This document shows, one piece after another, positions 12,661 to 39,048 of a stretch of DNA of 64,000 nucleotides. The position numbers and the translations under genes were made by a program. The stretch lies in contig NW_020847100.1 of assembly GCF_003704095.1 (NCBI RefSeq), positions 1 to 64,000 of the forward strand, written 5' to 3'. This DNA comes from Pocillopora damicornis. Lineage: Eukaryota. The notes beneath the pieces are model-generated. The model searched no databases. It saw only the letters and a list, made by a program, of their open reading frames with translations, and was not told where the DNA came from. Each line of letters begins with the position of its first letter. Within the stretch, counting starts at the first letter, position 1.

Positions 12661-13607
12661 ATTTTCGTTGAAAATATAAAAAAGTTTCACCACAAAATGG
12701 CACTTAACAATACCTCACAAGTTCCTCGAGTGACTGAGATTCTTTACAATATCTCCCGAATCGTTTACAAGACGATAAAGAACTTTGAACCGGGTAAATT
12801 ATCTTTAACAGCCCGATAACCTACCGTGTAATGCAGTAGAGACTCGGAATGTATGACGTCACATTATTGCCAGTTCCCTCAATGGCTTTTGTCCGATATT
12901 GACACAATTAATAATTCATACTCGAAAGCAATTAAAGCTGCGAATATAGGCTAAGTACTCTATTTGTGTAGTAGAAAGATGTCTGAGCAGCGTAGGCTTT
13001 TCTTTCCTTCTTCTCCTTCAACTGCTTCCTTTTTTTTTTACATGGGTACTACCCACAGAAGGCAATTTTTAAGATGAAAAAGATTGAGACACTTTTCAAT
13101 AGTATGACTACCGGACAAAATGAAATTTTAGTACAGTTTTGACAATTAAACATCACATGAATGCATGAATGTCCCTTCTGCTTGATAATTTCACTTTGCT
13201 TTCATGAATTTGGAATTTTTCATTTTGATATGTTATCATTCAAAAAGAAATTCTAACTATTTTTTTGTTTTTNNNNNNNNNNNNNNNNNNNNNNNNNNNN
13301 NNNNNNNNNNNNNNNNNNNNNNNNNNNNNNNNNNNNNNNNNNNNNNNNNNNNNNNNNNNNNNNNNNNNNNNNCAAGAGGGTTTTGAAATATGGAGTGCAT
13401 AGGTACATTTACACCTGAAAGAGGTTGCTTTGTACAATTTTTTTTTTCTGTTTAATATATATATACATATATATTTTTATATATATATATTAAAGCTGAT
13501 AATGAATCTGACAAAAGTGAGATACAAAGACAAGCCTTGAGTTCTCTCTTAGGATTTGTATGTCTTAATTTAAGTTGAATATCTCTAAAAAAATGTCAGA
13601 TACTTAC

Positions 13608-16475
13608 ATAGCACAAGGTTCCCTCGTAACATAAAGATCATATCCAGTACATAGATAAGGCAATGACTTGCATTTGTTGTCAGTATTTTTCAGAGAGTTG
13701 CACTGCTCACCATAATGAGTAAATCTCTCACCCACCGAACCTTTTTCCATTGAGCTGCAGTCTTTAGAATCATTTTTAGAACAAAGACAGCAAGTTCTTT
13801 GCTGTAATTGTGATCCTTTTTTTTTCAATGTCCATGTTTCATTTAACTCTTGGCAGTCAAGTTTCCAAGCACCTGATGACTGACTGTGTGCCACTAGATC
13901 CAGGCAAACCATGACAGCATGTTGGAGTGGGTGTCCTGCACATCTTAAGTCATGACACACAGCTATGGGCTGGTTCTTCTGTGGATCAACAATCACAGCT
14001 CCAATAGGAAACTGTAAATAAAAGATTCAGAGATTTTTGTTAGCTTGTTTGTATGAGGATAATAAAAAAGAAAGTTTACACAATGAAATTCTGATACTAG
14101 CCACTATTACAGGATTCCTGAGAAACACACAAAACCCATGAGCACTAAAAGTACTTCCAGAATGACTAGATAAAAAGGTGATGTGATCAGGAGCCAATAT
14201 CTAAAATTTACATCAGTCATGTCTCTCCTAGTCTCAACACTATGATAACAAAGAAGAGGCTATCTGCAAAATCAAAGCAGCCACTCCAACACAACTTCTG
14301 GATTAACATCTCAAAGTTGTTGAATGTCTGACTAATTTATTGAACAAGGGCAAACTAGTAAGCAATATGCACTGAACAATAATTTGATTTAGTCATTAAT
14401 TGAAGGAACATCGTGGGACTGGAGCTGGAAGATATCTGAACAAGGAACTGAGTTTTAGATGGGTAAATAAACAAACACTTTGATCCTCACCTGAGATACT
14501 GATGTCTTGATCCTCACCTGAGATAATGATGTATCACTGGTTATGAAAATGACTCATGTTCTCTTTTAATCTTACCTTTCTGGATGTCATATTCTGTGTT
14601 TCCACTATTGCCATTCTCATGAACTTTTCAATCAATGCCACTTCATCTTTGTTAAATAATTCCCCTTTTAATGCTCTTGAAACACTAAATAACATTTTCA
14701 AAGTAAATGAAGAAGATCAACACTAAATGCAGTTTACATAGACTGAGATATATTTTAGCAGGCCACAGCTGTGCACTGAATTATAGGATCTTATTAACAG
14801 CCTCTAAGGTGCCCAGAAATTCACTGCGTTTATATCAAACCATAAATAGAAGACAAATGCATCGGGTCTCCAAAAGGGCATAGTAATTGCCCATCTAAAA
14901 TCTTAATTGTTTCTCTGAACAATAAAGGATGCCTGGTCTTGGTTTACCAGCAAAACAACTCTCAGAGGAAATTTAACCCTTTACACCCTTGCATAATATG
15001 CTAGTCATTTTTAGTGGTCAAAGGGTTACTTAACACATGCAAAGTTTACAAGCCTGCTTGATCTCAAATCATATGTAACTTTAAAAAATCCAGACAATAA
15101 ACTCAAAAGTTTAATAATGTACTATTCTAAAATACAGAAAAAATTTGTCACAAAATATTCTTATATTTTTATGAATGAGGAATAGAATAGGGGTTTCTGA
15201 ATATACATAACACAGCTAACACATCAGGCCATTCCATGATTTTAAATAACCAAATATTAATTAATAACTTACTATTTGTCTTCATGAAAATTGACAGGCC
15301 AAAGGAGAGATGCTTGGTTAAACTGCTCTCTGGTCAAAGGTGGATGTTTTGCCACATTAGCCACAAAGGGCTCCCCAAGAAAATTTGCCGCTGTCTTGTT
15401 TTGTTGTATAAGTTGAGTAAATGAATTGTCTGCTGCTACCTCATTCCTTACACATAAGATTATTTGTAGAAGTGATTCTGAAATTTGAAAAAAGGTTGAT
15501 AAGAAAACGTAATTTTCATAATAAAATTTCGAAAAAAGAATTTAAAAGAATTGGTGAAATAGAAGAAAAACATATTTAAAAAAAAGTCATGCGAAATGAA
15601 AAAGATATCGCGTTCCCATACCGGGAGTCGAACCCGGGCCGCCTGGGTGAAAGCCAGGAATCCTAACCGCTAGACCATATGGGAGATCACATACTACAAG
15701 AGAGAAATTTATCATAAAAATCCCTTTTGTGTATGTTAATGCCATTCACACATAGAATGATATGGCCGTTTTTCAAAAAAAGGCTCCTTCTATACTTTCT
15801 ATGAACGTAGGAAACATTTTGAGTCATAAAGATCTAATTCAATTTGAAATCTCAATCTACTTATATTACAAAGTGAGTGGGAATTTCACGGCTGCCTCAT
15901 TAAAGTCATAACTTACCGTCGTTGACTTTGCGGCATCGCACTCGTCTTAAATGTCCTAACTCCTTCAATGGCAATATTTCATTTAAATCTCTGAGACATA
16001 AAAATTTTGTCTATTAACGTAACAAAATCAAATAATGGAGGAAAATCGCAAGAAATTGAAAAATCCGCGCGGAAATTTAGCACTCGTATGTTTTTTTAAA
16101 ATTCGTTTTTTATTTATACCTTATCAGTTGCGATGTTTGTGTTTTGTCCGTTACATCAGCTGCGTAAACTTGCACTGAAAATTGCCAAATACATAAATTT
16201 AGTCAGTGAAGTAGATGAGGCAAAGAATTGAGAGCAGTTCCGCTTCATACCTGTTTGAAAATCGCGCGTGTACTCGTTTGCCAGAACAGGTCGAGGAAAT
16301 GTTACTCCTTCTTTCATCTTTTCTTCAATGGATGAGGACAGAAACTGATCAGTGTAAAATCGAAGGTCATATTTTACTGATATTTCACTTTGGAGTTCTT
16401 ACCAAGTAATCCCTCACTTATATTATTCAATCTGGCTTTCTTTTCTGCAGGTTCCAGAGACAAATCCGACGCCAT
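13608..16475 (-). CDS. ADAT3: tRNA adenosine-34 deaminase non-catalytic subunit ADAT3/Tad3; last exon not visible, probably in the gap 13273-13372
   Basis: Exons approx. 16475-16403, 16322-16251, 16174-16120, 15990-15917, 15477-15273, 14684-14576 and 14012-13608. Motifs: PVLANE, HLRRVR, PPLTREQF...WPVNFH, GAVIVDP, HPLQHAVM (HAV, no catalytic Glu) and YLCTGYDLYVTREPCAM. Confidence 0.9.
15613..15684 (-). tRNA. tRNA-Glu (anticodon TTC)
   Basis: TCCCATATGGTCTAGCGGTTAGGATTCCTGGCTTTCACCCAGGCGGCCCGGGTTCGACTCCCGGTATGGGAA is a canonical 72-nt cloverleaf with A/B boxes and a downstream T-run. Confidence 0.97.
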
Positions 16476-16532: not shown

Positions 16533-19500
16533 ATGGCGGCTTTCTCAAAATATTTGTTGATCTCTGTGCCCGTGGTGGCCCTGGCGGGTATTGCAGCATT
16601 GTGGTGGCAACTGGAAAAGAGAGAGAGGTCTTATACAGAAGTAGGTCGTGTTTCTAGCCTGATCATTTATCCCGTGAAATCTTGCAAAGGAATTCGCGTG
16701 GATAATGCAAAGTGCTTCAAAGAAGGAATGGAACATGATAGGTAAGCCTAGCTTAGCTTGTGTCCAAAGTTACGATACAAAGAAAAAAAGCCAAAGAAAC
16801 GGAACTGCGTGCACAAAAATCATCTAAATGAGCACTGAAACAGCTCACAAGGACCAGAAAGAAAGAGACATAAGCCCAGAACGAGGTTATTTAGTTTGGG
16901 TTGCGTGTGTTTTATGTCTTCGCGTGATTTTAGTTTGGGTTGCGTGATTTAGGGCACGTATTTCCAGTGACAAATTTTGTTACGGAACATTTCAGTGAGG
17001 AAAAGACTGTATCAATTTGATTCGAATTCAGTGGATTACTATCATGGTTGATCCTGTATTTCGCCTATTTGCATCGCAATTTTTTCTAAATGAAATCCTT
17101 GGGCTGCGCACATTATTGGGATGTTTTCAATTAATCCTTCAGTCTGGGGGACCAAAAAATATAGAAGCATCTGTCTGGCATTTGGGACATACTACGTAAA
17201 ACAGAGACTTAGCTTAAGGGGAACCGAGGTGCCCATTATCTACCTTTTTGAGCAAATACATTTTTTCCCCATATAAGTGAACAACGTACAAATCCCTTAA
17301 TTCAGGTGAAAATTCGTGACTCCAGAGAATCTGCACAAGATAAATATTCTCCAATGCTCCCAAGCTAGATACTCAATTTGGAAGTCCTTCTCATCACAAA
17401 TACCAGCCTTCCTTCACCCAAGGCAGAGCATTGGGGGAAGCTATGTTATAAAAGTGCATGATAGTGATTTATGGCTGTGACCCTCCTCCCCCACCTCAGT
17501 CTCCCCCCCACCACCACCACCTTTTGAAAACTCCTAGTTAAGCCACATTACAATGATAATATTTTTGTGAACCACTTTTTCTTGACCATTTACTCTAGCT
17601 CTAGGCCCCCATTCTCCCAAGGCTTTGAAGATATATCCTTGCACTCTTGGAAGCAGCTTAAGTAAAGCATCAATTTACAAACTGTACTGGTTTCTTGTCA
17701 CATGACTGTGACTGCTACATATGATGATTTGATTTGATTATTTTTTTTTATAGGCGTTGGATTCTTTTGGATGAGAATGATATTTTTATTTCTCAACGGG
17801 TAGATCCAAAGCTGGCTTTGGTTGTTCCTCATTTTGAAGGTGGAAAATATCTTTGTCTTGATGCCCCCGGAATGAAAACCTTGAAGCTGAATATAGACTT
17901 ACCAGAAAATCAACAGGAGTCCAAGAGGATACGGTGAGTCATATAGCATGCACAGTCTGCCTTTTAGTTTTAGTTGAACATTCCTTTTTACATAGATAAT
18001 AGGGTAGTCTTTGCAGTTAAGTAATGTACAGTTTCATTACTAGTTAATACTTAGCAGAAATAAACACTCTTAATCTCAATTTGACTTGGAAACTGTAGTC
18101 CAAGAGAAGTGTCACATGTAAAATTCTAATTGAGATTACCAAACATTCTGTATATAAGCAAAAGGAAAACAATTCTTATGAAAGAGAGTCAACAATATTT
18201 AATTTGCAAAACATGTTTCCATGACTGGAAAATGGCAAAGAAATTTCAAAAGGTGTTTGCAGACTACAAAATGTTGTCTCTTCTATACCAGTTTAGATTA
18301 TAATTTTAATGGTCATGTATACTTCATCTCCTGGATAACCTGCATGTTGCCTAGATCAAAAGCCAGTCTTCCTATCACCTTGACATTTCTTGAAATTTAC
18401 CATGTAAATTAAGTTAAGTATGGATATTTAGAGATGAGGGAATTTAAAAATAAAATAGATTTGAAGTTATCCCTATCAAAAAACTACATCTTTGTCCAAG
18501 GATGGTGGAACTTTGTTTGTTTTTGGACTGGATACAAAATAATTAATTTTCTTTTTTGGGGAGAGATCGGCATAGAGCAATCAAGAATTAGAATTGTTGG
18601 GGGGGGGGGGTTTGAGAATAGGGATGTGTTCCAATATTGACTCTATCGGCAGATTCCAGGTTTGTAAAGGTTGGCAGATCAGATAAATATACTAACCTGT
18701 TAGAAAAGACTCAAATGTGGTTTCCTTGCAGGTAGTATCCAAGCCAATCTTTATACTGACATTTCTGTAATTTTTCAGGGTGTATAGGGTTTATGGAGGA
18801 GGTCAGTATATTGGAGATGAAGCTGCTGAATGGTTCTCAAGTTATTTGAAAAGACCTGGATGCAAGTTGTATAAACTCTCTCAGCCTAAGTTAATCTGTG
18901 AGGATGAAAAGTGGGGTGATGTTGCTTTGCCAGGAGACAAGGTAATTTAAACATTATTTGTAATGTTACACCCTTAGTTTAAAATCAGGTGGTCCTATAA
19001 GTCAGAAAACTCTGATTTAATCTTTACAGCCTCAAGCAGACTATTTTCTATTAATTCTTTTAACATATCCTCCTGTTGCTTTTTTTTCACTGAAGACCCA
19101 TCCAGTGGCAAATGCCAGTGGAGGAAGAGGGGGAAGGAGATTTTAGCCCTGGCCCAGCTACCATATTGATGTTACTCTTTATTAAGAGGACACGTTACTC
19201 TGGCAAGGCCTCTCTCTGTCCAAGGGTGTAAATTGGTAAATAATAGTTCCAGCAAACTTTTGGGCACACTTGGGAAATAACTAGGATGGACTGAATTGCA
19301 GCTGCACTGATTATCCTATTCATGTGAAAGGGAAATAACAAGACTTCACATCACTTCAAGATGTGATAAATAACAGTCAGAGTAAAGTTTATTAGTAGGC
19401 TTTCAAGGTCACAAGGCCAAGAAGACTTAAGATGATAACATTCTTTGGGTTTGATGTATATCTATTGTAAAATTATGCTTAAGAAGAAGTCAGTTACGGC

Positions 19501-21260
19501 ATTGGATCACTGTCAAAAGGAAAGTAAAAACTTTTACTTCTTTCATAATTCATATCAGCAAATGAATGTTATGCAAACATGAAGGAATTTTAGAGTTGTG
19601 AGAAGTTTCAATTGTCAATGTATTCCTCGTTTTGTTTTCTCTTCCTTTTTTTTAACCAAGGCATCATTTGGAAATTTTTCTCCCTTCATGATTACAACTG
19701 AACAATCGCTTGTAGCTTTGAATGGAGTACTTCCATCACCAGTTACTATGGAAAGATTCCGTCCAAATGTTGTGGTTGACGGTTTGAAGGCATACGATGA
19801 GGTCTGTGTTCCATCTCATATTTCTTGTGAAAGAAATTAATGCTACCACTGTAGCGCCTTGAGCACTTATTAAATCTGTAGAGCTTGAGATCCAGAGTGG
19901 GTGCCTATTTAAGTTGGGAGCTTATGGGAGGCTGGGTGCTTATAAAATTCTCACCATTTTCAGCAAGTGGTAAATTATTTTGCAATGAAACGACGAGTAA
20001 TAACAAAATTTTAAGATGTACAACAAACTTGTGATGCGTAACCCAGTCTCTCATGCACTTCAGCTTTTTNNNNNNNNNNNNNNNNNNNNNNNNNNNNNNN
20101 NNNNNNNNNNNNNNNNNNNNNNNNNNNNNNNNNNNNNNNNNNNNNNNNNNNNNNNNNNNNNNNNNNNNNNNNNNNNNNNATATTAAAAGGTGATCCATGT
20201 TCTATTTTTCTTTCCACAGGATAAGTGGACAAAAAAGATAATTAAGATAGGGGATGTAGAATTCAGATTTCTGAAGAACTGTGGAAGGTGAGTGAGTGAT
20301 GTTTCCAAGAAGTAGTCCAGATCCATTGACATCCACATTTTACAGTTTGAGAATTTCCAGTCTTTTAATCAATGGCATACTTTGAAAGCTTAGAGATTTG
20401 ATTAAAATATTAAAATGTTTAAAATGATTTTTTCCCAGATGTTCATTGACAACTGTAAACCCTGCAACAGGAGAAAAAGAAGGAAATGAACCCTTAGCTA
20501 CTCTGCAAAGGTAATTTCTTACTTGTTAATAAAGGTACGTATTGCTTGTCCTCTACTTTGTTGACTGCTATTTAACAGTTACCCATGGCCAGAGAGTCAG
20601 AAAAATTTCTTTTGCTGAGAGAAAATTTTTTATTGTATTTAGAAAAAAGTTTCTTGTGGATGCATCAGAAAAAAAGCTCAGTGAGTTCATCTTAGGAAAA
20701 TTGGTTTTCTATTTTAGTTTTACCAATTGGCTTCTTGTAAAAGCCAATTTCATATTGGGAAAATTGTTTTCAGTCAAAAGCCATTGGCCACAGCTTGATA
20801 GCATGACTATGAAAAGTAGATAGCAGTTCTGGGTACAAGTTGATAAAGGGGGTAAGTTTCTAAAGAAACTGTGGGAGAGTATAACAAAGTAGTTTGGTAT
20901 TATGAACCAAATTGATAACTTAAATTGGCCACTGTAAAAAGTATCCAAGCTAATGTTTTGAGTGTTAAGCCCTTCATCAGAGCAAAGGATGAAGGAGGAA
21001 GGGCTAATGCTCAAAATGTGGCCAATTTATGTTTACCTGATTGATAATATCAAATTACATTGATACAAGTTAAATAACAAATTATGAGGGGATCATGGCA
21101 AGTAACTGCTTTAATCAATGTGTCTTTTCACAGGATAAGGCTCCCTGAGGACAGAGATCCCAGGCAGGGAAAAGCTCCTCTTTTTGGAGTACAGTTTGCC
21201 CTTGATGGAGATAGGATAGGGGTTGTAAGGATAGGAGATATAGTGATGGTCTCTGCATGA
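16533..21260 (+). CDS. MTARC: Mitochondrial amidoxime-reducing component (mARC, MOSC_N + MOSC), paralog A
   Basis: Seven exons: 16533-16741, 17754-17933, 18779-18941, 19661-19801, 20220-20288, 20439-20510 and 21134-21260. N-terminal anchor, IYPVKSCKG, DRRW, ERFRPNVVV, NCGR|CSLTTVNP (Mo-ligating Cys), EPLATL, PLFG. Confidence 0.92.
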
Positions 21261-21492
21261 CTGGAAAATTAAGTAGTGTTGGCAGCTCAGCATGCCTTGA
21301 ACTAATTAAAAAAGTAGTTTGTGGTAATATAATGCTGGACCATATATTTCATGCATACTATTTTTTTNNNNNNNNNNNNNNNNNNNNNNNNNNNNNNNNN
21401 NNNNNNNNNNNNNNNNNNNNNNNNNNNNNNNNNNNNNNNNNNNNNNNNNNNNNNNNNNNNNNNNNNNTTTTTTTTTGTTTTAACTAATCCAG

Positions 21493-24417
21493 GGTTTGGA
21501 GGGTTTATGGAGAAGGTCTCTATTGTGGAGATGAAGCAGCAGAGTGGGTATCTACTTTTTTAAATAAACCTGGATATAAGATGTATAAACTTTCCAAACC
21601 AAGAGTGATATGTGAAGATGACAAGTGGGGTGATGTTGCTCTTCCAGGTGACAAGGTAAATATAACATAACAAAAGGGAACAGATGTGTATAGAACAGTC
21701 TTGTTGGCCGCGCGTGGAAGATGCAGTAGCCTACAAGTAACAACACCCTCCCCCTCACAAAGGTAAAATGGAGGCAAGGGAGCCCCTGTGCCACTTTTGG
21801 GGAGGGTGTGGCTACACCTAGGCTAAAGACGCAGTGTTCTACTTGTCAGTGCACTGAATTCTGAGTCGAGGTCTGGGTCCAAGACCTGGTTAGGTGAATG
21901 TGTGATGTTCTTGGGCAAAGCTCTCTCTTTCTCCACCCAGGAGTATAAATGGGTCCTGGCAAATTATCAGGGAAGTCTGATGAAATGTAGGGCTAACCTT
22001 GCAATGGATTTGCACCCCATCCAGGGGAGGGCCAAAGGGCTTGTGTACAGACTTTCCTTTTACCTTTTGTTGGCCATGTTGGACCACATAATGGATGCTC
22101 TCAAAGTCCAGAGCCATCTGACATTTTTGATTAAGGAAGAAAAATGGCAAGGCTAAGAATGGAAATGATTGCAATGCTACATAAAGATGTAATTAAAGTA
22201 TATTTATTTATTTCTATTTCCAAGGATGTTGCAGGATCATTAGTAAAAGCTGTTTAACTCTTAGAGTAAGACTTACCTCATTTATTTTTCTTCTTTACAT
22301 CTTATATATCTTGTTTGTTGTTCAATCCAGGCAGCATTTGGAGATTTTGCTCCATACTTGATTGCAACTGAGGCCTCATTAGAAGCTGTGAATACTGAAC
22401 TTTCATCTCCTGTGACAATGGAAAGATTCCGTCCCAATGTTGTGGTTGAGGGTATGAAGGCATTTGATGAGGTCAGTATGTCAATCCATTCTGTGATATC
22501 GCATAAAAATTGATTAGACTTTCATTATGGTCACACTTTTTCCCTTTTTTACAGGACAAGTGGGCAGCTAAGATAATAAAAGTTGGAGATGTTGAATTTA
22601 GATTCCTAAAACGATGTGGAAGGTTAGTCAGTCATAAAATACATTGAAAAATAGCATCAAAAGTGTCAGTGGCTATCTTGAAAGTTAGTTTTGGTCAGAG
22701 TAGGGTTTTAATAAAAGTTGATTATCAATAGTCTATACTGCTGCCTGTAAGACTTGTGAGGAGGATCTTGGGTTTGGGTTTTGCTTTACAGCCCTTTTCC
22801 AGGCACAGCTGCCTAGTGTGCCATTGGCAGCAGCATATGGAAAAGGAGTTTGAAACCCATGTCAAGGGTAGAAAACACAAGAATTGGGAGAGAAACTTTA
22901 ATCCAGCTAACAATGATGTGAATCAGCAAGAAACGCAGGCTACATGTGAAGCTAGAACTGGAATTTTATTCTGGGTCCATCACAGTTTATCAGTCCATAC
23001 CTTTTTCTCTCTATGAAATCTCCCTTTTTACCAGTTATGCCCCTGGGCCATGAATATTACAAAGAGGAACCTCTTACAAGCTCACTTAAACATTCAAGAA
23101 TCTACATGCACTTTCTGGCTTATATTGTATAAACTAGCATTTTATTTAACAGTTGCTTTGTAATGTTGGTTGCATAGAACTCAATTGCAGTTTGTGTGAA
23201 TGTTGGCTAAAAATTTTGCATATCTTATATGTCATCTTTCAATATAAAGTTACCCAATATTTCTGATTTCCAGTTTCTGAATTGTTTACAAAGGTGTCAG
23301 TTAACAACAGTGAATCCTGACACAGGTGAAAAAGAAGGAGATGAACCTTTGGCAACTTTAAGAAGGTAATTGTTTCTCTATCCCATCACCAACAATTTTT
23401 TGACACAGATTAACAAAGATTAGAGTCAGCAGAATTTCAAATTGACAGTTTACCTTGCAAGGGTTTAGCCCTTATTCCACAATACAGAAATGAATGCATA
23501 CCATACTCCACTGGCGGTTCATGTCAGCACTGAAATCCAACTGAGGTTAAAATGATTTTCATATTAAATTGATTGACCATTGACACTTTGTAGTGTCATT
23601 TGGACTGTGCTCTTTTCAACAATATGGCTTTTAACCACAATCTGGCAGGAACTGATCAAAAGGCATCAGAGAATTGGATACTTTCCAGCTACTTATTGAA
23701 TTTTCTGGCTAATTTTTAAGATTGGAGAGCTTTTTTGTTAATTTTGAGACATGGAGAAAAATTAGTATGCTGCTACATTTATCAAACTTATTTTCCCTCC
23801 CAAGAGTAAACAAGACATAACTTCTCCCTCCACATTTAATACATAATCAAAGGAACAATGTCAGCACAAAATCTGCACACCTACCCCTCCCCTTACCCAA
23901 CATTAACCTTAACTTAGGCCAGGGGATGGGTTATTGGGGAGTTGTTCAGATACAGGCATTGATCCATATCATACAGGCATTGATCCATATCATTCACATA
24001 ATTGATACGAAGACAGTAGGTATCGACCAGGGGACTATATTTTATCCAACAACAAATTCTCAGTGCTAAAATTATAAGGAATTGTGGCAGATGGTAATGA
24101 GAATTACTATGAATTGAAAACAGATTGAGATCTTGGTATTGGAAGGTTTAATCATTTCATGTAATGTGCAATCTTAAGATGAAATCATTGCTTTGGATTG
24201 GTTGCTTTCTAGTTGACCCCTTGTTGATGAGCTGATGCCTAAGAATACATTTAATTCTGCTAACAAATGCAACTTTTAATTTATTTTCAGAATAAGGCTT
24301 CCAGAAGACAGAGACCCAAGACAAGGAAATGCCCCTCTTTTTGGAGTTCTTGTTACCCCTCATGGCAATACAGTGGGAGTTATAAAGATTGGAGATGCTG
24401 TCATGGTTTCAGAATAA
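21493..24417 (+). CDS. MTARC: mARC paralog B; only exons 3-7 visible
   Basis: Exons 21493-21655, 22331-22471, 22554-22623, 23294-23365 and 24291-24417 are open and in frame. Motifs: AFGDFAPY, RFRPN, RCGR|CQLTTVNP. A gap at 21368-21467 precedes them. Confidence 0.85.
21826..22035 (+). mobile_element. tRNA-headed SINE with a Deu/Nin-type central domain
   Basis: A degenerate tRNA-like head is followed by ttcttgggcaa...ctccacccaggagtataaatgggt...atggatttgcaccccatccagggg. A decayed relative lies at about 19130-19330. Confidence 0.6.
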
Positions 24418-25738
24418 CTGCAATTATAATAACAATAAATATTTAATTGTGTTGCTTAATATTTAATTTTGCAAGTGTAGATAAAGCGTTGCTTTGAGTA
24501 GAAGCATTATAGTGTGGAAGATTTGGGGGATTACAATGTCCCTTTTTATTTTTTATTTTTTTATTTATTTATTTATTTTTTTTACAGTAAGCCAAAATTA
24601 TTTTACAGCTTTTTACCTGATAATATCCTTCAGTAGGAATGCAAATTTGGGCTGAAAGGTTTATCATTAACATATTGTATTTATATTTTGTTCCAATCAG
24701 ACTGTTTTCGCTCAGACAATAACTCACCTATTATTTAGAACCGTTTTTTTGTTTGTTTTGTTTTGTTTGTTTCATATTCTCAGATTTCATGCACTCACTA
24801 TTTTTCATGCACTCACTATTTTTCCCTTTGAGGAAGTGGAAACAAAATCTTAATTTAATAGATTGATTTATTCACTGATTTTTGTTACAGGGGAGGGAAT
24901 AGTGTATTTGCTATAAGAGGTTCTTATTTAATATTTAAGCTATGTTTGAAGTGGGTCTACTAATTAAAATGAAGGGTTCAGTTCTTATTTAAATCTGATG
25001 GTTTAATTATGCAAACATGTTAAATGTGAAGTATCTTAATGGTTTTTGGGTTTGTAATAACTTGGGGATAAGAGAAAAAAGGGCAGGTAGCTTAATTGTA
25101 TTGTGGAATAGTCCAGCTTCTCATGAAAATATGGAGTGAGGTTGGTTATACTTCCTCATGCAGAAAGTAAAGTTATGGGGACTACCAATAAATAAACATT
25201 GTATTTGCCAATATTGTTTGTTTTGCATTGACAGGTATAAACTTACTAAGGTCTTGGTAAAGATGTCCAAAATTGAAACTACCACAAAATGAATTAATTC
25301 TTTGACAAACTGGACCTTCTGCTTCCTTCTTTCAAACTCAATGTTTCGTTGCCTGTAATCTGACTGCAAAAGCCTTGCAGGCTTGTCAAAATACGACACA
25401 ACTCATAAAAATACTCAGCAGTACTACACACCAAAATGTCTGATAAAATAAATTTACTGTATTCACAGCTTAGGGTCCAAGGGTCTGTATTGCTCTGCTA
25501 CAAAAATTACCACCAGACAAGAAAGAACAGTTTTCAACTGATTTTAATGTGTGTTATGGAAAGGTAGACAACTACGTGATTTTGAACACCCAGATAAAGT
25601 AACAGTATAATCAATACAACCTTAGACTTGAGTTGCTGTCTTTACTTTTTAAAAGCTATGCATTTTTTGCAGCTCTTTCTGAAATCAAACTTGTTATAGA
25701 ACATAAGGATGATAAGGAATGTTTCCTTCCCTGATGGC

Positions 25739-28700
25739 TCAAGACCAAATCATGACAACGTCTCCCTGGCGTATGACCCCCATGCCATCTGTGTCTGGAG
25801 CAGCATTGATCCCAAACAGAGGGGATCTGTCATATCGTGGATCTCTATCCTCAGGAAGCCTTATTCTGGAATAAGTTGAAAAAACAAATTAAATATGCCA
25901 TAAGGTTTAGTTGATTTTGATATTCCGTGTAGTGATCACCACATGTCAAAAGAAAGGGTGAAAACTGTTGGGAATTGTCACCCACATATATGTTCTACCA
26001 ATCACCTTTCTTTCTTAAGAAAATTTAGAAGAGGAAAAGAAAACATTGAATTAAGTAACATGCTTTTTTTAAGAGCATAGCTAGATTTTGAATTTCAATT
26101 GTACCTTCGCAAAGTTTTCAAAGGCTCTTCTCCTTTTTTCTCTCCTGTTTTTGGATTAACAATTGGCAGACTGCACCTTTTAAAGAAAGATAGTTGTGAT
26201 CAATCAATATTGTAATGTCAATAATTTCTAGTTTTGTAGCAAATACAAGTTCAGTGTTTAGGAAATTATCACCTATTGAGCATTAGCTTTGAATATAAAA
26301 AATATGGCTCGTACAACATATTGAAAAGCTTACCTTGCACAGTTGTTTAGGTATCGAAACACCACATCCCCTATTTGGATTTTTCTTCCACCCTCCCATT
26401 TGTCCTGAAGAGGAATTAAAATTTTATTTTAGGTTTGACTAAAGATGGCAAAAATTTAATTACAGCTTACTAACAAGACATTTCATTTAAATGTCTGCAA
26501 ACAGTTAAGAGCCATGTCAATTGAAATTTTTCTATGAGGTGTCACATTGTAGGTCAAAATAATCATAACGAATGAAAGCATACCCTGAGTTGATCAAGCT
26601 GCATTTTTAAGAATCAGGACATTGAAATTCAAAAATTGATGTAAATGTTCATGATGATTTTATGACCACAGCTATAAAGAGGTAAGGTGAAAATTGGTTT
26701 GTTGAAAAACTGACCTCCTCAAATGCATTTAAGCCATTGACCACAATGTTAGGCCTGAATCGTTCCATTTCCAAAGGTAATGAAAGTTCTTGATTCAGTG
26801 AAGCCAAGCAAGCTTCAGCAAGAATCATGTATGGAGCAAAATCCCCAAATGTTGCCTGTTAATTTAAGACAAAAAGTAAACTGATCTGGCAAAGATTTAA
26901 TGTCAAAATATACATAACACATGCCATACTTAATTCTTTCCTCCCTGAACACTTAAATTATCATCAAAACTTCAAGATCTGTTTTTTTCTTGAAAAAGCA
27001 CCCATGCTCTAATAAGGGCCCTCCCTCGAATAAGCATCCTCCCTCAGCTATAATGTCAAACAAGTGCCCTGCAGCTCCTCCCTTACACCTCTCTCAATTT
27101 CTTAATAGTAGGGATACAAGGAAAACCTGTGTCTGTCACCACTTCATTTATAAACTTTTAGGCTTAATCTACAGCAGAATCAGCACAGAGGAAAAACCAC
27201 AGGCCACCCAGAGAAGAGAAGCTTCTCCTATGTACATAGTAAACCTTGAAATGGATAACATGCTAAAACGGGTTCTTTCCAACATGGTAAGCAGTCAGAT
27301 AACAAGCAATGCACTGTGGAGGTCAGATGAGGTAATTTTATTAAGAATTTGGCTGTGTTTTTTTGTTCCTAAAAGCAGTCATAAATATTCCATACAAACT
27401 CTTATAATTTTGCAATGACTCCCATTTTGTAAGATGATCATCTGACCGCTGGAGCCTGGGCTTCCTGTGGTATAACAGGTGCCCGATTGATTAAGTACCC
27501 TCCTTCCAATGAGCACTTTTTACATAAGCACCTGGCAATGATTTGAAGAAATTTGGAAGTATTTTATAATCTCTTTAATAAGTCTTAAAAACTTTCCAAA
27601 TCACCTAAAAAGAAACTAAACAATAGTAAGTTTGATTAATTAGATTCCAAAGAGATGGCATTAACTACTATCAGTAAAAGAAAAAAGAAACTCTGTTTCA
27701 TTACCTGGTCTCCAGCCTCTCCAATGTCACTCCATTCATCATGTGTCCTTATCACTCGAGTCCTGGACAACTTGTACATCTTATAACCAGGTTTATTCAT
27801 GTATTTAGAAAACCACTCTGAGGCTTCATCTCCTACATACTGGCCCTCTCCTTCCATTCCAAATATTCTGTGTGGTTTGTGAAAATAATTATTTACTATA
27901 ATACATTATTTTAAGGTGTTGGAAGAATGATGAGTAGATTAGGTATGTACATAACCAATTTTAAATTAAGAATTATTACAAATATTTTAAATGCACTCAC
28001 TTTATTCGTTTGAATTCCCTTTGATCCACTGGTAGCTGTATTTCCAGTTTCAACATTTCCATTCCAGGAGCATTCAGGCAAAGATATCTGCCATCCTCAA
28101 AATGAGGAACAACAAGCGCTAATTTTGGATCTTTTCGCTGTGTAATGAAGTTCCCTTTTGCATCCAGAACGATCCAATNNNNNNNNNNNNNNNNNNNNNN
28201 NNNNNNNNNNNNNNNNNNNNNNNNNNNNNNNNNNNNNNNNNNNNNNNNNNNNNNNNNNNNNNNNNNNNNNNNNNNNNNNNNNNNNNNNNNNNNNNNNNNN
28301 NNNNNNNNNNNNNNNNNNNNNNNNNNNNNNNNNNNNNNNNNNNNNNNNNNNNNNNNNNNNNNNNNNNNNNNNNNAGAATGCCGAGGTGTCACGCAAATGC
28401 AATCTTTGCTTGTCACGTTCCGATGTTGACCATACCGGTCGATATTAGACACTAATACATAGCTTTCTAAAATACCGCTTTCTTTTCTTTGTTGTTGTTT
28501 GTTTTTGTCTTTGTTTGTTTGCTTGTTTGTTTTCTCGGAGAAAACGGATCAACTGATGGAGAAAGTTGCGTAATAACCGACCCTGTTGTGACATCACTTC
28601 AAAACAAACCTGGGGTTGAATTGGCACAATGCCAGTATTATAATCATTTTATTTTATTGATTTAAGTAACTAGGAAATTCAATGCGAACCGTGTTAAATA

Positions 28701-29558
28701 AATTAACAACTTAAACGTTGTACTCTAAACATGCAGCACCGGCAGCATTTGAGATCGAAGAGACCAAGTTGTTTTCATGGAACGAAATAATACCTTATAC
28801 GTCCCAAAGTTCAGTGTAATTTGATCTCTGATTTTATCGGTTTATTTAATCGTTGCACACGAATTTCGAAGATATTCATTTTCCAATGCTTTCATGTACC
28901 GCGTTTTCGATGCTTCCATTGCCATCTCCTATATTTGCTTCTATCTACCGTGTATCGATTACTGTATGCATAATCTCCTACTGTTGTTTTATTGCAGGTT
29001 GTTACAGTCACGCGATTCGAACAATCGATCTCTAGTGTACTTATCGTCCGCCACGAACGTTTAGAAGAAACTAGTCGAGCCCTAGCAAACTGAGGAAGTT
29101 CTAATCTACCCATACGATGATTTGTTTTTTCTTTTTTGAATAAGAGTAATCCCAGGTCAGAAGTTTTGTTTTGCGTGCAATGTGCACGGTTGACCGAATA
29201 ATTAGAACCAAGAACTACCTGAATTTGACAGCGCGTCGAATCAAATCAGTCGCACCTTGTAGATATTTCCAGAAAACGAATATAAAGAGGTACAAGGCTT
29301 TGAGATAAACTTTTTGAGGTAAAGAAGAAATCTAGAACTTAAATTTCACCTGTCATACTCCATTCCTTCTTTGAAACATTTGACGCTGTCCATACGGATA
29401 CCTTTGCATGATTTCACCGGGTAGACGAACAGACCAGTAACACTCCCCACTTCCTTAAAGGAGCGACTTTTCACATGCTGTTTCCACCAAAGTGCAGCGA
29501 TGCCTGCTAAAGTTACAACAGGCAAACCAATCAACAGATATTTGGATTGTGGAACCAT
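25739..29558 (-). CDS. MTARC: mARC paralog C
   Basis: Exons approx. 29558-29350, (gap)28178-28001, 27867-27705, 26856-26716, 26404-26334, 26177-26105 and 25865-25739. Motifs: VYPVKSCKG, TQRKDPKL, TFGDFAPY, RFRPN, NCAR|CSLPIVNP, RYDRSPLFG. Confidence 0.92.
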
Positions 29559-30606
29559 CTTGTATTGACCTCGAATTCAGACGCAAGCTCAGGGTAAAAG
29601 CACCGGCTGGTGGGGTGGTGAATCGGAGGGCATGGGCGAGATTGGATTTAATTTGTCTCGAGGTGGGTAGGAGGGGTGGGGAGAGGGTGAGTGATAAATG
29701 GGCTGGCCTTGGTTTTGAGATTTCCCCTCATAATTTTTTTGATTTAGAAGTGTTGACCAGTTACCGAGGTTTCCGTTACCCGTTTGAAACGTAACTGGGT
29801 ACAGAGCGGGTGCTTTTGTTTTGTTTTATGATGGACAAAGTGCAATGTATGGTCTTACAATCCTACAGCAATTAATGAGCTCCTGTTTACAGATAAATCA
29901 TTCAGGAAAACATTTAAAAAAAGCGAATAGTTGACGTTCATTTTGAAAATCTTTTAATTTCTTCAAAGGCCAACCCCAGAAGACCAAATATATGTAAATG
30001 TTTGCTTTTGGATCACGTCACCCCACCTACCTTTCCATCCCTTCCCGACTGGAGGAGACACGGATGCATGAACCCCATTACTTGCTTTCCATTTCCGGGA
30101 AACAAAAATTCCAAATTTTCTTGGTTCTGGGCATGAGTTGGCATATGTGCACTATCAAGACAGCATGTTTATTGACTTGAAGCAATTCAGTACGAAGAAG
30201 GAAAAGTAAAATCACAACTATTTATCTATTCAATTTTCCTATTTACTCTTACACGGGGTAGACGATTGATTGTGTGAAGACGTGTTTGAGGATCTTGAGA
30301 AACACTGTTCTTGACGGCTTAAAATAAATCCTAAAGTATCTTATCTGTTTGTCTTTTATTTGACCGAGAGACAAAAGGAGAGAAGAGGCTGTTAACATTG
30401 ATGTATGTCAGGTCTCAAGAATGCATGAAGCTCTGTCCAGGCTGCGTTTCGTTATGTTTACCCAGAACAAGAGAAAATAGTTAATTGATAATTAATAGTC
30501 ATTTTCCCTTGTCCAGAAGTAACGATAGCGTCACGCAACTGTACCATATCGCCCGGACGTGACATAAACGTTACGCAAAATTCACGCAAATCGACAACGT
30601 TACAAT

Positions 30607-33600
30607 ATGGGCTCATTTCATTCACGATTGTGGAAAATTGCTCTTCCCGTTTCGTTGCCTTTACTTGCATTTGCGTATCTTCGTTGGAGGCAAATGCAAG
30701 TGAAAAAGATCGAACTATTTAGGCAAGTAGGTTATGTGTCCGGGCTATTTATCTATCCCGTCAAATCATGCGCAGGAATTGAGCTGGAAAATGCTATGTG
30801 TTTTACAGAAGGCATACAATTTGACAGGTATATTGAATTCATTAGATCATCCCCATTGCACCGTGTTTATTTATGTTTGCTTTTGTGATATTGACTCTTA
30901 CAAGTTGTTTTTCAATGACCACTTATTCCTTCATAAAGCGACTGATGACAATCGAAAACAATATCCCTCTAGTTAACACAGCTCACGCGCAAACAAGTTA
31001 TCCAAAAGATCCTTGATTTAAAAAAAATTATAATGAAAAGAAAACCAATGAAAGTAAATGGAAATCCACGAGATCCGAAAACCACACAACCCTGCGGCAT
31101 TGGCTTTTAATGATCTCCAATCTCAATCGATTAATTGTTGAGACTATCGTTTGTTGTCATTGATTGTTATTGGTTACCATTGAAAACGCAAAGCAATCTG
31201 TAGTTAAATGGAAACTTTTGGCTCTCTCTCACAGGAATTGGGTGGTAGTAGACCGAAATGATAAGTACCTTACTTCGGTGGACAAACCAGTGTTGGCCCA
31301 AGTGGTTCCACACTTTGAAGATGGCAAACTTTGTCTCAATGCCCCTAGTATGGACACTCTGAGAATTCCTATTCAGCTGGACACTAAGGAGTTTAAAGAC
31401 CTCAAGTATTAAACTTTACCTTTATTGTACAATATTCTTGCAGAAGTTCACATTTCTTGGATTTGTTAATGCACTCAAAATCGGCAATCTCTCTAAGATT
31501 CGTGAAGACCCCTGTATAATTAGTTCAGGATCAATATCAACCTTGTACATGTAATTGGCTCATTCATGGATGATGATGATGATGATGACAAATATTATAA
31601 TTATCATCAATATTATTATATTATGATCATTAAAATATGATCCTGAATGCATTATTCATGACTAACTTTAGGGTACTGAGAATCTCATCCAAGAGTTGCT
31701 ATGTTGGAGATGAAGCTTCTTTATGGTTTTCAACTTTGCTGAACAAACCAGGCTGCAAAATGTATCAAATTCATGAACCCCGAGATTCCACAAAAGATAC
31801 AAAATGGGGCAATCTAGCATCACCGGGAGACAAGGTAGGTTCAGAAATTGTCCATTTTTGTTCTGGTTTGTCAAACTGTGAAATTCAGGTACCAACTTGA
31901 TTTTTAGATACTTCAGTTGAAAGGGTATGTGGCAAACAGGCAAACAAGCTACCTGAAAGACCTCAGGTAGATTGTTATATTGTTGGTTCAAATGGTCTAT
32001 TCCTTGTGAAACACAGGAGATGGTCTCAACAAGGTGATAGTTTTCATGGCTTATGGTTAAAATTTTGACCATTAACTTTCTCCCTTTTAAAAGAAAACAA
32101 AATTGTGGTATAATTTTTTTTCAACTGTTGGTTAAAATTTTTCAATTTTTACACCTAGCAGCTGAATTTTTGAGATAATAGTTACAGCGTATTTAAGGAG
32201 AGGGGGGTGGAAAGAAGTTTTGAGGTAAGGGGTAAGAGGGGGAGAGGAAGTGAGGGGTTGTTACATGCAGCCTTTTGAATGTGAACTTTATAAAATTTAA
32301 TTGAACAGGTTCTTTGGGTAAAACCCTTGCAAACCTTTGATAAACTGATAGCTTTTACTTCTTATTTTCCCCTAAGTTTATAGCTTTTCAATCAATAGAA
32401 GCATTTTAGTCACTGAGAACCTCACCCTTCAATCTTGCGAAATCTTATCATCTCCAATAATACTAGAGCTCAGTAAACTTTTCTATTGGCTTTTCTATCA
32501 ACTTTTCTATCAGCTTATTTGCGTTTTAGTCTATGCCATGAGTTTTCAGCACTGACAATAATTTTTTCACCTAAAATCATTTACTGGTAATTATGATTAG
32601 ATTATATCAAATTGACCAATTTGTGTCTTATTTTGGCTATACAAGAGGTGTTCAGCACAGCGTTTTTTTCACCCAAGACCATTTATCTTTAATTGTAATT
32701 AAATTATACCAAATAAATGTTGTAGAATTTAGAGTTCAATATCAATATCTGAGTAAGTTCTGCACACCTACCCCTCTCCTGGCCTAACAATAAAGCCAAT
32801 TAATTTTGTTTTCAGTTGTTTGTTGTTGGATCAGGGGAGGGGTAGGTGTGTAGTCTCTGATACTGATATATTGATCACAATTCAGTTTCACTCTCTCTTT
32901 AAATGTTCTTATTGGGTAGGTGGGTTATGCAAGTTTTGCAGCATATCATATGACTACAGAGTCATCACTAGTGGAACTGAATGGGATTTTGAAATCCCCC
33001 ATTGGGATGGATAGATTCCGTGCTAATGTTATCATTGGGGGCACTGAGCCTTTTGCCGAGGTTTGTTACTTTAATGAATTTAAATTTCCTGTCCCAGATT
33101 TTTTCCTTTGTAACTATATTACAACAAAGTCAACTCTTTACAGTGAACATCAGTATGCACATTCTCCTTACTGTTCTCTATACATTACATAAGATTTGAA
33201 CAAGGAGAATTTGTTTAACAATCAAGAGCTTCTGTAGGTTGTCATCATTTCCTTTATTCTCATAACCTTAATGTCTGATACAGTGGTGATAAATTGTAAG
33301 GAGAAATTAGATGCTTGTCACTCTGAGGGGTTAAAGGGTTAACCCTTTACACTCAAACATCAGTAAGCATGTTCTGCATAATGTTTACCATACGTTTTCT
33401 AAGGTGCTGTCTAGGTGAATTTGTGGAACGATCAAAAGCTTCTTTAGTTTGTGGTCAATTCCTTTATTCTTGTGACCTTATTGTTTGATTCCAGGGTGAT
33501 ACACCATGGAAAAATTGGTTACCAATTGCTCTTTGGGCTAAAAGGGTTAACCTGTTGACTGTCTTCTCGGGACATTATACTATCTTTTATCCTAGGAGAT

Positions 33601-35029
33601 CTGTATAAGATAAAAAATTGCATTTCAACAGTTTTGTAGAACTGCAGTGTAATGTTCAGTGCAAAACTTGTATGTTTTGGGATAGTACAGCACTCAGGGT
33701 AAGTGCATCCATGTTAGCTAATTGTAAATTATTTACTCATTTTAAGGATCATTGGCACCAAAAATATCTCAAGATAGCAGATATTAGGTTTAGAACTCTC
33801 AAGGACTGTGGAAGGTAAATATTTGTTCAAGTTTTCAAGAAGTAGATGAGGTTGCATGAGCTTTGTTGCCTTGGGTAAGATGCCTATGACTTGGGCTCGA
33901 ACTCAGAATCACTAAGCAGATATGGAGTTTGATGTTTAAAATGGAAAAGTATGCCAGCATTTTCCTGGAGGCCATCACTAGTCTCACTTATTATAAACCA
34001 AATTTTGTCAAATAAACACCTGGGTGCAAAATTTCAGCTCATAAGGAGGGGTGCTTATTCTGAAGAAGGGCACTTAATGGAGAGGGGGGGCTTGTTGAGA
34101 AAGTATTAGCCTGTACTGATCCTGCTGTATTTGAAGCTTAAAATGTTAACTTAAATTGGCAATAGAAACAGGTCTCCTCTGTATCCCCACTGTTTAAGAA
34201 AGGTACTTGTACTTGGTACTCAATGGCTAAGGGGGTTGGCACTTAAAAAGAGCAATGGAGGAGAACCATATTCTGTATGTTCAATGAGTTATTCAACATT
34301 GTTTTCCAAAGATGTACCCAGATCACCATAGATCCTGAAACTGGGATAAAGAATGGACTTGAACCACTCTCAACTTTGAGAAGGTGAACCAACAAATTAT
34401 TTTCCTTTTACTCAATATCATTATTGTGAAACTTGTTACTTCATTGCACTTGACCAAGGGCATGGCACAATTCCTGGAAGTGTTAAACATTCCTTGTGGA
34501 ATTCAAGAGTTTTCAACTTTATGTTGATGTGTCAGCTGTGATCAATAGGGTTAAAATGTAATTGTTTTTCCTCCTCTACCAATGTTTGCAAACAAGGACC
34601 ATATTCCTTTGTCATTGTGGAATCAGAGAAAAATTGTGACCAACAATTCTCAAGTAACCCAGTGAAAGAAATTTAATCCAAATGAGAAACTAATTTGATA
34701 ATAAGTCAACCTGAATCAATGTCACTATATGAGCAATTAGGCACCTACCCCTCCCCTAACCCAACATCAACCCTAACTTGTTATCAGTTAACTGGTGTTG
34801 GGTTAGGGGAGGGGTGAAAAATCCAGTTTTAATTCATTTTTCTATTGCTCTGGGTATAAAGATCATACTGAGGAGAAATGATCAAGGAAGCATCTTATTT
34901 CTCTCTAGGACAAGATTGCCTCAAGACAGAGACCCAAGACATGGTAACGCTCCTTTCTTTGGGATTCAAATGGCTCCAGACTGTGAAGGAAATATCAAGC
35001 TTGGAGACCCTGTGTTTATCTCCTGTTGA
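30607..35029 (+). CDS. MTARC: mARC paralog D (most divergent)
   Basis: Exons approx. 30607-30827, 31235-31405, 31672-31834, 32920-33060, 33747-33815, 34312-34383 and 34909-35029. Motifs: IYPVKSCAG, DRNW, RFRAN, DCGR|CTQITIDP, PFFG. Confidence 0.9.
33135..33550. mobile_element. Two adjacent TTAA-flanked MITEs sharing one TTAA
   Basis: The junction reads ttaaagggTTAAccctttac at 33331-33350, and the second element ends aaagggttaa at 33550. Confidence 0.75.
34740..34820. repeat. Short palindromic MITE (acctacccctcccctaaccc...gggttaggggagggg)
   Basis: The arms are inverted repeats. Related copies lie at 23870-23965 and 32755-32860. Confidence 0.65.
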
Positions 35030-38757: not shown

Positions 38758-39048
38758 TTCAGAAACGTAGAGTATTTCAAGACTAAATAAAAGTCTTGAT
38801 TTCGGGCATCAATACGGCTTTCAAAATGGAGGGCGACGTGGCATAAAGAGGGAGAAAGAAGATCCGGGAATTCTTTTGTTTGATGCAGACCGCTGATCAA
38901 GCACGGGCAATTAGATGAGCAGGCCTGGTTTCTAAGGAATATGCGATGTTTTGTGTCTACTTACACAACAAAGTTTCTTTAAAGGTGAGCTTCTCAGGAG
39001 GGTGAAATTTTGCGATCGAGAGTCAGAATTGTCCTAATTTTTTTCAAG
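38758..39048. promoter_or_regulatory. Bidirectional promoter TMED10/ATP6V1D
   Basis: The divergent ATGs are about 290 bp apart. A YY1-like caaaatggagg (38822) and GACGTGGCA (38835-38843) lie between them. Confidence 0.6.

Follow-up and report, generated by a model that had tools for sequence, protein, structure and literature searches.

A tandem array of four mARC-type genes with one divergent paralog in the stony coral Pocillopora damicornis

Introduction

Mitochondrial amidoxime-reducing component (mARC) proteins are molybdenum enzymes whose physiological substrates, like the basis of the difference between the paralogs mARC1 and mARC2, are open questions, and which are a drug target in fatty liver disease. 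Their bacterial relative YcbX is an N-hydroxylaminopurine reductase composed of a MOSC_N and a MOSC domain. The present study concerns a cluster of four mARC-type genes (A to D) in the stony coral Pocillopora damicornis, located at positions 16533-35029 (start codon of A to stop codon of D) of a 64,000-nucleotide stretch of DNA that is referred to as the window (positions 1 to 64,000, forward strand, of contig NW_020847100.1, RefSeq assembly GCF_003704095.1). The assembly has been published previously (PMC6208414).

One or two mARC genes per eukaryote, with a maximum of three, were counted in a 2018 review (PMC6321594). Human mARC1 and mARC2 (MTARC1, MTARC2) have been shown experimentally to be N-myristoylated (PMC4200515). 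According to specialist reviews, mARC1 has no well-defined substrate pocket and its Mo ion lies in a bowl that is open and exposed to solvent, redox potential is given as the reason why mARC1 and mARC2 differ, and structure-activity relationships are unclear (PMC10637980, PMC11513889). Plant ARC1 and ARC2 and Chlamydomonas crARC, which are likened to the coral genes here by their description only, are independent paralog expansions of the same family and, unlike animal mARC, non-mitochondrial. The crARC protein is a nitrite reductase forming nitric oxide (NO) with nitrate reductase as electron donor, a precedent for the donor partner changing the reaction. A literature search retrieved neither a description of mARC in corals nor the biochemistry of any cnidarian mARC, and orthologs of the genes described below are named "mitochondrial amidoxime-reducing component 1-like" or "2-like" by NCBI.

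By every defining feature examined, A to D are members of the mARC/YcbX family. They have the same MOSC_N plus MOSC architecture as the human proteins, the same CxRC motif with C273 (human mARC1 numbering is used throughout), the K67/S68 and RFRPN motifs, and the N-terminal hydrophobic anchor, and in both cases more than one paralog is encoded per genome. However, the coral proteins are only 29-36% identical to human mARC1 and mARC2, and they occur in four copies instead of two, which were duplicated independently of the mammalian event. The D-type proteins lack R107, D209, and P212 but have the MGxxxS myristoylation consensus in common with the human proteins, whereas the A, B, and C types lack Gly2; A carries the replacement D209N. 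Bacterial YcbX has the same two-domain core and the same approximately 50 conserved columns, nearly all of which are kept by A, B, and C, but YcbX-like proteins have no membrane anchor, and R107 and D209, both lost in the D-type, are found in all 192 bacterial sequences sampled. The locus is probably best explained as an old tandem array of four expressed mARC-type genes, with A to C canonical and D representing a divergent subfamily whose cofactor shell or domain interface would be altered.

Four mARC-type genes in one array

Over the complete window, a six-frame scan together with local BLAST searches of exon-sized pieces detected 26 exon pieces of mARC type, and these all lie between 16.5 and 35.0 kb. 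In the resulting gene models (Table 1) all introns are of the GT-AG type, and the codon positions of the six introns coincide, their phases being 2, 2, 0, 0, 2, and 2. An earlier note on this DNA, made from the sequence alone, had described four paralogs with common intron positions that all retain CxRC, and both statements hold, the motif reading CGRC in A, B, and D and CARC in C. The Pfam domain MOSC_N (PF03476) was recognized on exons 1-2 of A, C, and D, only the MOSC half being assembled for B, and MOSC (PF03473) on exon 4, with single-exon scores that reached or approached the curated cut-off. Both domains are present in the near-identical public proteins P0107, P0110, and P0332, which were used as stand-ins for A, C, and D, respectively, in searches, look-ups, and folding; the joined exon models were used in local alignments and trees only. 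A is 98.1% identical to P0107, a protein of Pocillopora meandrina. Genes B and C are arranged tail to tail with 1.3 kb between them, and the spacer separating the head-to-head genes C and D possibly contains a promoter region common to both. With four mARC genes in one array, stony corals go beyond the maximum of three in the 2018 count.

Table 1. Coordinates of the mARC-type genes and associated features in the window
Feature	Position	Strand	Remarks
Gene A	16533-21260	+	complete, 319 aa (amino acids), 7 exons
Gene A exons 1-7	16533-16741, 17754-17933, 18779-18941, 19661-19801, 20220-20287, 20439-20510, 21134-21260	+	
Asn codon of A, human D209 column	19673-19675	+	AAT
Assembly gap	20070-20179		within intron 4 of A, no coding effect
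Mo-ligand Cys codon of A, human C273 column	20440-20442	+	
Assembly gap	21368-21467		hides exons 1-2 of B; written as 100 N
Gene B	21493-24417	+	exons 3-7 only in assembled letters, 189 aa visible
Gene B exons 3-7	21493-21655, 22331-22471, 22555-22622, 23294-23365, 24291-24417	+	
Mo-ligand Cys codon of B	23295-23297	+	
Gene C	25739-29558	-	320 aa, 7 exons
Gene C exons 1-7	29558-29350, 28178-28001, 27867-27705, 26855-26715, 26404-26334, 26176-26105, 25865-25739	-	
Mo-ligand Cys codon of C	26173-26175	-	
Assembly gap	28179-28374		removes acceptor of C exon 2 and about 2 nt; carried as XX
C-D head-to-head spacer	29559-30606		about 1.05 kb between starts
Gene D	30607-35029	+	divergent D-type mARC paralog, 318 aa, 7 exons
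Gene D exons 1-7	30607-30827, 31235-31405, 31672-31834, 32920-33060, 33747-33814, 34312-34383, 34909-35029	+	
Val codon of D, human R107 column	31278-31280	+	GTG
Ser codon of D, human D209 column	32932-32934	+	AGT
Mo-ligand Cys codon of D	34313-34315	+	

Expression and integrity of the gene copies

All four genes are expressed. For A, every junction from exon 2 to exon 7 was seen as a GT..AG joint in RNA contigs (three runs from two studies), including the in-frame connection of exon 4, which ends at 19801, to exon 5, which starts at 20220 (joint 19799>20218). The transcript-derived protein P0110 aligned to C over 320 of 320 residues without any indel and with four substitutions in addition to the XX; since this alignment runs across the gap junction, exon 1 of C continues into exon 2 without a break in the frame. 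The public gene model pdam_00003781 (P0111, 294 amino acids) corresponds to C minus residues 52-77 and is otherwise identical, and its annotation appears to have been spliced around the assembly gap with the loss of part of the MOSC_N domain. Residues 33-318 of D are identical to the transcript-derived protein P0332 (286 residues), whose cluster has 25 members.

Because the stop codon of A lies at 21260 and the acceptor of B exon 3 at 21493, exons 1-2 of B are not contained in the assembled letters. RNA contigs of B (up to 1839 nt) join position 21493 to at least 260 nt of upstream sequence, a part of which has about 81% identity to exon 2 of A (25-28 differences in 134-145 letters) and is followed by unplaced sequence. 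As this upstream sequence is distinct from exon 2 of A, B has its own expressed exons 1-2, and the true length of the preceding gap must be far above the 100 N written. The joints between exons 3-4, 4-5, and 5-6 of B were seen in RNA contigs and exon 7 as a loose end; the reading frame is intact, the invariant residues of the family are kept wherever they are visible, and the ratio of nonsynonymous to synonymous substitution rates (dN/dS) versus A is 0.16. A 5'-truncated pseudogene was thus ruled out for B by the long spliced mRNA contigs, the intact frame, and the low dN/dS. The use of B exons 3-7 as an alternative 3' block on exon 2 of A was rejected on account of the upstream differences and of the last 43-54 letters of the contigs' upstream part, which occur nowhere on A. 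An apparent backward joint (23365>21135) is an artefact of B exon 7 being placed on A exon 7, the loose end at 21190 continuing as B exon 7.

Three runs of N lie within the cluster, and the assembly is based on short reads, a type of assembly known to miss repeats and tandem duplicates; the paralogs might therefore be suspected to be haplotigs or copies mis-joined around the gaps. Such an artefact has practically no probability left and was ruled out by a protein identity among the copies of only 43-73%, by synonymous divergence (dS) of at least 1, and by the transcripts of its own or the orthologs in other corals that each copy has, as well as by the RNA contigs spanning the gap in A. All pairwise estimates (NG86 method, exons 3-7) gave dS values of at least 1 and dN/dS values of 0.11-0.24, which indicates that the copies are old, under purifying selection, and not haplotigs. 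Tandem duplicates are often missed by short-read coral assemblies, and the missing half of B fits this known loss (PMC10236652). Together with the 26 residues absent from pdam_00003781, the half-assembled B means that the family is undercounted when it is read from this assembly.

As an observation apart from the genes themselves, a piece of about 32 nt in intron 6 of A (20843-20874) was covered by RNA contigs in each of the four runs (summed depths 730-4450) and is flanked on both sides by dozens of differing loose ends. It appears to be a short sequence common to many transcripts or repeats.

Conserved residues of the four paralogs

Residues were compared in an alignment of the four models with 249 family members, of which 52 were labelled as eukaryotic or reference sequences and 197 were mostly bacterial and YcbX-like. 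Human numbering was set on the mARC1 chains 6fw2, 7p41 (A165T), and 29aj (M187K) of the Protein Data Bank (PDB) against marmoset mARC1 (P0261); subtracting 1 from the marmoset number gives the human one, and A165, M187, and the C273 of the literature (2023 review) are recovered in this way. A PDB search with exon 2 of A alone did not reach mARC1, and the primate mARC1 recovered by homolog search was used for the numbering. One Macaca mulatta sequence named "mitochondrial amidoxime reducing component 2" in UniRef (P0243) had a near-zero tree distance from two mARC1 sequences; with P0243 being mARC1-like, the comparison set is one without a true mARC2.

The 52 columns with a conservation of at least 85% were scanned independently of the residues listed in the earlier note. 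A departs from them only at D209N, an Asn also present in P. meandrina, P0230, and Oculina 374, and B and C show conservative departures only; C and its orthologs have T277I, four residues from the molybdenum-ligating Cys. A, B, and C thus are canonical, keeping essentially every residue of at least 85% conservation; D209N in A is their sole departure at a top-ranking residue, and the others, L180M and T277I among them, are minor. In D, the departures are R107V, L114Q, D209S, P212A, P239A, and G260A. The residues K67, S68, R238, N240, R272, E251, D252, and W254 are all present in A, C, and D, as they are at the visible positions of B. Among the 249 family members, the molybdenum-ligand column (C273) holds Cys in 245, the R107 column Arg in 233, and the D209 column Asp in 231; the latter two are invariant in the bacterial sequences (192/192) and rank 26th and 30th in conservation among 281 columns. 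When the presence of R107 and D209 is taken as a criterion, which is derived from this alignment and not from a published family definition, D lacks both residues, A lacks D209, C has both, and B has D209 with the R107 column hidden.

The earlier note had read five columns as residues of a substrate pocket and had proposed that this pocket is systematically rewired in a radiation of N-O reductases with different substrates linked to symbiosis or stress. Its letters were all read correctly: the R107 column has R in A and C and V in D (B falls in the gap), the H152 column Y, W, F, and L in A to D, the D209 column N, D, D, and S, and the S271 column G, G, A, and G. The letters Q, Q, Y, and H that it assigned to Y317, however, belong to the human Y308 column (KLYGKSP), whereas the true Y317 column (FGQYF) reads Q, L, N, and Q in the four paralogs and N, H, Y, Q, or E in animals. 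Besides the differing letters, the proposal is favoured by the strong conservation of R107 and D209 elsewhere, with changes at these columns that are fixed within clades, and by the differences between human mARC1 and mARC2 toward N-oxides and N-hydroxyurea. In contrast, judged by the alignment, columns 152, 271, and 308 are ordinary variable sites that vary just as much where animals have a single copy, and in bacteria. Non-coral animals have W, F, Y, H, or K in column 152, and G, T, S, D, A, or E occur in column 271; the entropies of columns 152, 271, and 308 in non-coral eukaryotes are 2.67, 2.56, and 1.96 bits, and family-wide columns 271 and 308 rank 199th and 276th of 281. Equal variability in single-copy orthologs, which the earlier note itself had named as evidence against its reading, was thus found for three of its five columns.

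The absence of a defined pocket in mARC1, the lack of clear structure-activity relationships, and the explanation of paralog differences by redox potential in the reviews cited above also speak against systematic rewiring. In a full-text literature search that did not extend to the Kubitza 2018 structure paper, R107, H152, D209, S271, and Y317 were not found described as pocket residues, nor were positions 152 and 271 as discriminators of mARC1 and mARC2; a full-text search for D209/Y317, molybdenum cofactor (Moco) contacts, and mutational scans returned nothing relevant. Re-specification of the pockets at five positions is therefore unlikely, and a systematically rewired substrate pocket is not established; what stands of the proposal are the multi-copy family, the invariant Mo-ligand Cys, and the changes at R107 and D209. 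To name N-oxides, NO, or peroxide as substrates, or to link them to symbiosis, is speculation.

Phylogeny and the D-type subfamily

In a careful IQ-TREE run, the D-type sequences, a clade containing A, B, and C (ABC clade), and the sea-anemone sequences formed a hexacorallian clade (support 98/90) apart from the sponge and jellyfish groups treated below. The D-type clade (100/100) comprises eight members, namely D, P0332, Oculina patagonica G041378, Orbicella faveolata P0335, sequences of Porites lobata and Acropora millepora, and two further sequences, and its stem branch has a length of 0.52 versus 0.18 for the ABC clade (99/98). The sea anemones Nematostella, Actinostola, and Exaiptasia contributed one sequence each, all in one clade. 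In the ABC clade, C falls together with Oculina G041376 and one other coral sequence (100/100), A with P. meandrina and P0230, and the placement of B and Oculina G041374 is weakly supported. The suggestion in the earlier note that C looks ancestral, which goes back to its consensus letters at the listed columns, does not agree with this tree, since C is nested deep in the ABC clade with its Oculina ortholog and carries its own derived T277I.

The occurrence of D-type sequences in complex corals (Porites, Acropora) as well as robust corals (Pocillopora, Oculina, Orbicella) places the duplication that separated D from ABC before the split of these groups, which dates back at least 245 million years (PMC10236652). 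The locus tags of Oculina G041374, G041376, and G041378 are neighbours on one chromosome, and the accessions of two Montipora genes are adjacent, which indicates that the array is conserved; as the two Montipora genes fall into different ABC sub-clades, part of the ABC multiplication is also old. The array thus is scleractinian-wide with later additions, at variance with the lineage-specific radiation that had been proposed. Its range includes the cold-water coral Desmophyllum, so the array is not limited to symbiotic lineages and not tied to symbiosis, which further weakens the case for pockets re-specified in that context.

All D-type members share the departures at the two top-ranking columns, with V, Y, or F at 107 and S or A at 209, and have A or S at 212 and, for the most part, Q at 114 and A at 260 (in one fragment, columns 107 and 114 cannot be read). 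The loss of two family-invariant and three further conserved residues, together with the long stem branch, would be compatible with a catalytically dead or cofactor-poor pseudoenzyme with a role, for example, in regulation, in carrying Moco, or as a scaffold for the binding of partners. Yet all eight proteins, from lineages separated for at least 245 million years, keep C270, R272, C273, K67, S68, R238, N240, E251, D252, and W254, and of the 52 conserved columns they keep about 45. No disturbance of the fold is predicted either: the AlphaFold2 model, calculated for D only, has a pLDDT of 96.9 and a pTM of 0.93, and in Foldseek it matched the human mARC1 structures 6fw2, 7p41, and 29aj with a TM-score of 0.89 (E value 1e-25). 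Since D-type genes are also expressed, as seen from P0332 and its cluster, a pseudoenzyme is quite improbable.

The full-length D-type proteins, including the orthologs P0333-P0336, all start with MGxxxS(R), the N-myristoylation consensus (30607-30624, +, in D), and an MGxxxS start is also found in primate mARC1-like sequences. The A-, B-, and C-type proteins instead start with M[A/V/S/P]..SKY and have no Gly2, and the sea-anemone proteins also lack it. As read from the sequence, the N-termini of A and C consist of a hydrophobic stretch of about 19 residues followed by a K/R-rich stretch, and that of D is comparable after MGSFHS.

Coupled loss of R107 and D209

Across the alignment, window models included, 230 sequences retain both R107 and D209, 13 have lost both, three have lost D209 only, and none has lost R107 only. 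The three D209-only cases are all changes from D to N, in A, its P. meandrina ortholog, and Oculina 374. One of the 13 double losses (P0067) is an unrelated repetitive protein, and the others belong to three groups, namely the D-type of corals, a pair from sponges (Sycon ciliatum P0062, and P0044) in which L114 is also changed to K or Q, and a scyphozoan group (P0120, P0240, and P0242) whose member P0240 clusters with a Rhopilema esculentum protein. Descent of the D-type from an ancient paralog common to the sponge and jellyfish forms was rejected by approximately unbiased (AU) tests with groups chosen post hoc, both for a single origin of the coral, sponge, and jellyfish sequences (p = 0.0045) and for one of the coral and jellyfish sequences (p = 0.007).

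Repeated joint loss without a single loss of R107 only is the pattern expected of a directly interacting pair, and we infer that R107 and D209 may form an Arg-Asp contact near the cofactor. Neither the D-type subfamily nor the repeated loss of both residues together appears to have been reported.

Inferred function of the array

From the biochemistry of the family, each of the four proteins would be anchored in the outer mitochondrial membrane by its N-terminal helix, would bind Moco via the conserved Cys and the set K67/S68/R238/N240/R272, and would use electrons from cytochrome b5 together with cytochrome b5 reductase for the reduction of N-oxygenated compounds. By analogy, all four presumably still bind the cofactor and accept electrons from these partners. 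A, B, and C may differ mainly in their regulation, with largely redundant chemistry and the usual drift of the surface around a Mo site that is open and promiscuous. For the D-type, an altered second shell of the cofactor or an altered interface of the two domains could affect redox tuning or substrate range, and membrane targeting would probably also differ by being myristoyl-dependent. An NO-forming role of any of these proteins in corals would be pure conjecture.

An alternative account is that the array consists of ordinary tandem duplicates that were retained for reasons of dosage or of expression in particular tissues or stages and that encode chemically equivalent promiscuous N-reductases, with neutral or structural changes in the D-type. 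Tandem duplicates make up almost one third of the predicted genes in two coral genomes (PMC10236652), dN/dS is low and similar in all pairs, the Mo site is open and promiscuous, and mammals likewise keep two largely overlapping paralogs. However, two residues without exception in the bacterial sequences have been jointly replaced in every D-type member over at least 245 million years, and the same pair was jointly lost in two other animal lineages; moreover, the D-type stem branch is about three times as long as the ABC stem, and within the array the MGxxxS start is confined to the D-type. Equivalence of all four copies is the less probable account.

The probable explanation remains an old array with three canonical members and a divergent D-type. 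Several points weigh against it: the R107/D209 covariation is based on three or four lineages, the groups compared in the AU tests were named after the tree had been seen, and the loss of two bacteria-invariant residues could mean loss of catalysis instead of altered catalysis. In addition, the R107 column of B is hidden in the gap, and the branch order within the ABC clade is weak (83/56 to 91/87), which makes any orthology assigned to A and B tentative.

In a bolder version, which we put forward tentatively from sequence comparison, the D-type would be a scleractinian-wide mARC subfamily in which the coupled loss of the Arg-Asp pair, otherwise kept from bacteria through to mammals, remodelled the surroundings of the cofactor, resulting in another redox potential or reaction than in the neighbouring canonical copies along with a different, myristoyl-dependent location, and the same remodelling would have occurred independently in calcareous sponges and scyphozoan jellyfish. 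If this is true, R107/D209 would be a natural switch setting what mARC enzymes do. For enzymology, the array offers similar proteins of one organism with R107/D209 present or absent, a comparison that can be used to ask for the role of this pair in cofactor binding, redox tuning, and substrate range. As far as coral biology is concerned, it extends the catalogue of tandem expansions modestly, a link to symbiosis or bleaching being unproven.

Family size and genomic surroundings

The complete P. damicornis assembly (234.35 Mb in 4393 contigs) was searched with Pfam MOSC and MOSC_N and exon 4 of D as queries, and the MOSC_N/MOSC loci obtained were A to D plus the Moco sulfurase MOCOS only. The latter was identified from a further MOSC_N match at positions 99917-103297 (+) of contig C1014, which is on the same strand as Aminotran_5 exons and 2.4 kb downstream of them. 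Like the cluster genes, MOCOS bears MOSC_N in its C-terminal domain, but unlike them it is fused to a NifS-like domain, has another exon structure, and is located outside the cluster. MoaE was found in the host genome, so the host is able to make Moco.

No gene for cytochrome b5 or b5 reductase was found in the window. A tRNA-Glu gene (anticodon TTC) is located at 15612-15684 (-), about 850 bp upstream of the start codon of A (Rfam, 63.6 bits; ARAGORN). Exon pieces on the minus strand matched the zinc-binding region of cytidine/deoxycytidylate deaminases (13607-14026), a p24/GOLD family protein (38443-38808), and Arpin (47960-48250); these neighbours have no functional tie to molybdenum enzymes. 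The exons of a tumor necrosis factor receptor (TNFR)-like gene extend over 52628-56668 (-), with TNFR cysteine-rich repeats in the open reading frame pieces 54613-55047 and 56258-56668, a transmembrane-like piece at 53618-54130, and a death domain at 52628-52921.

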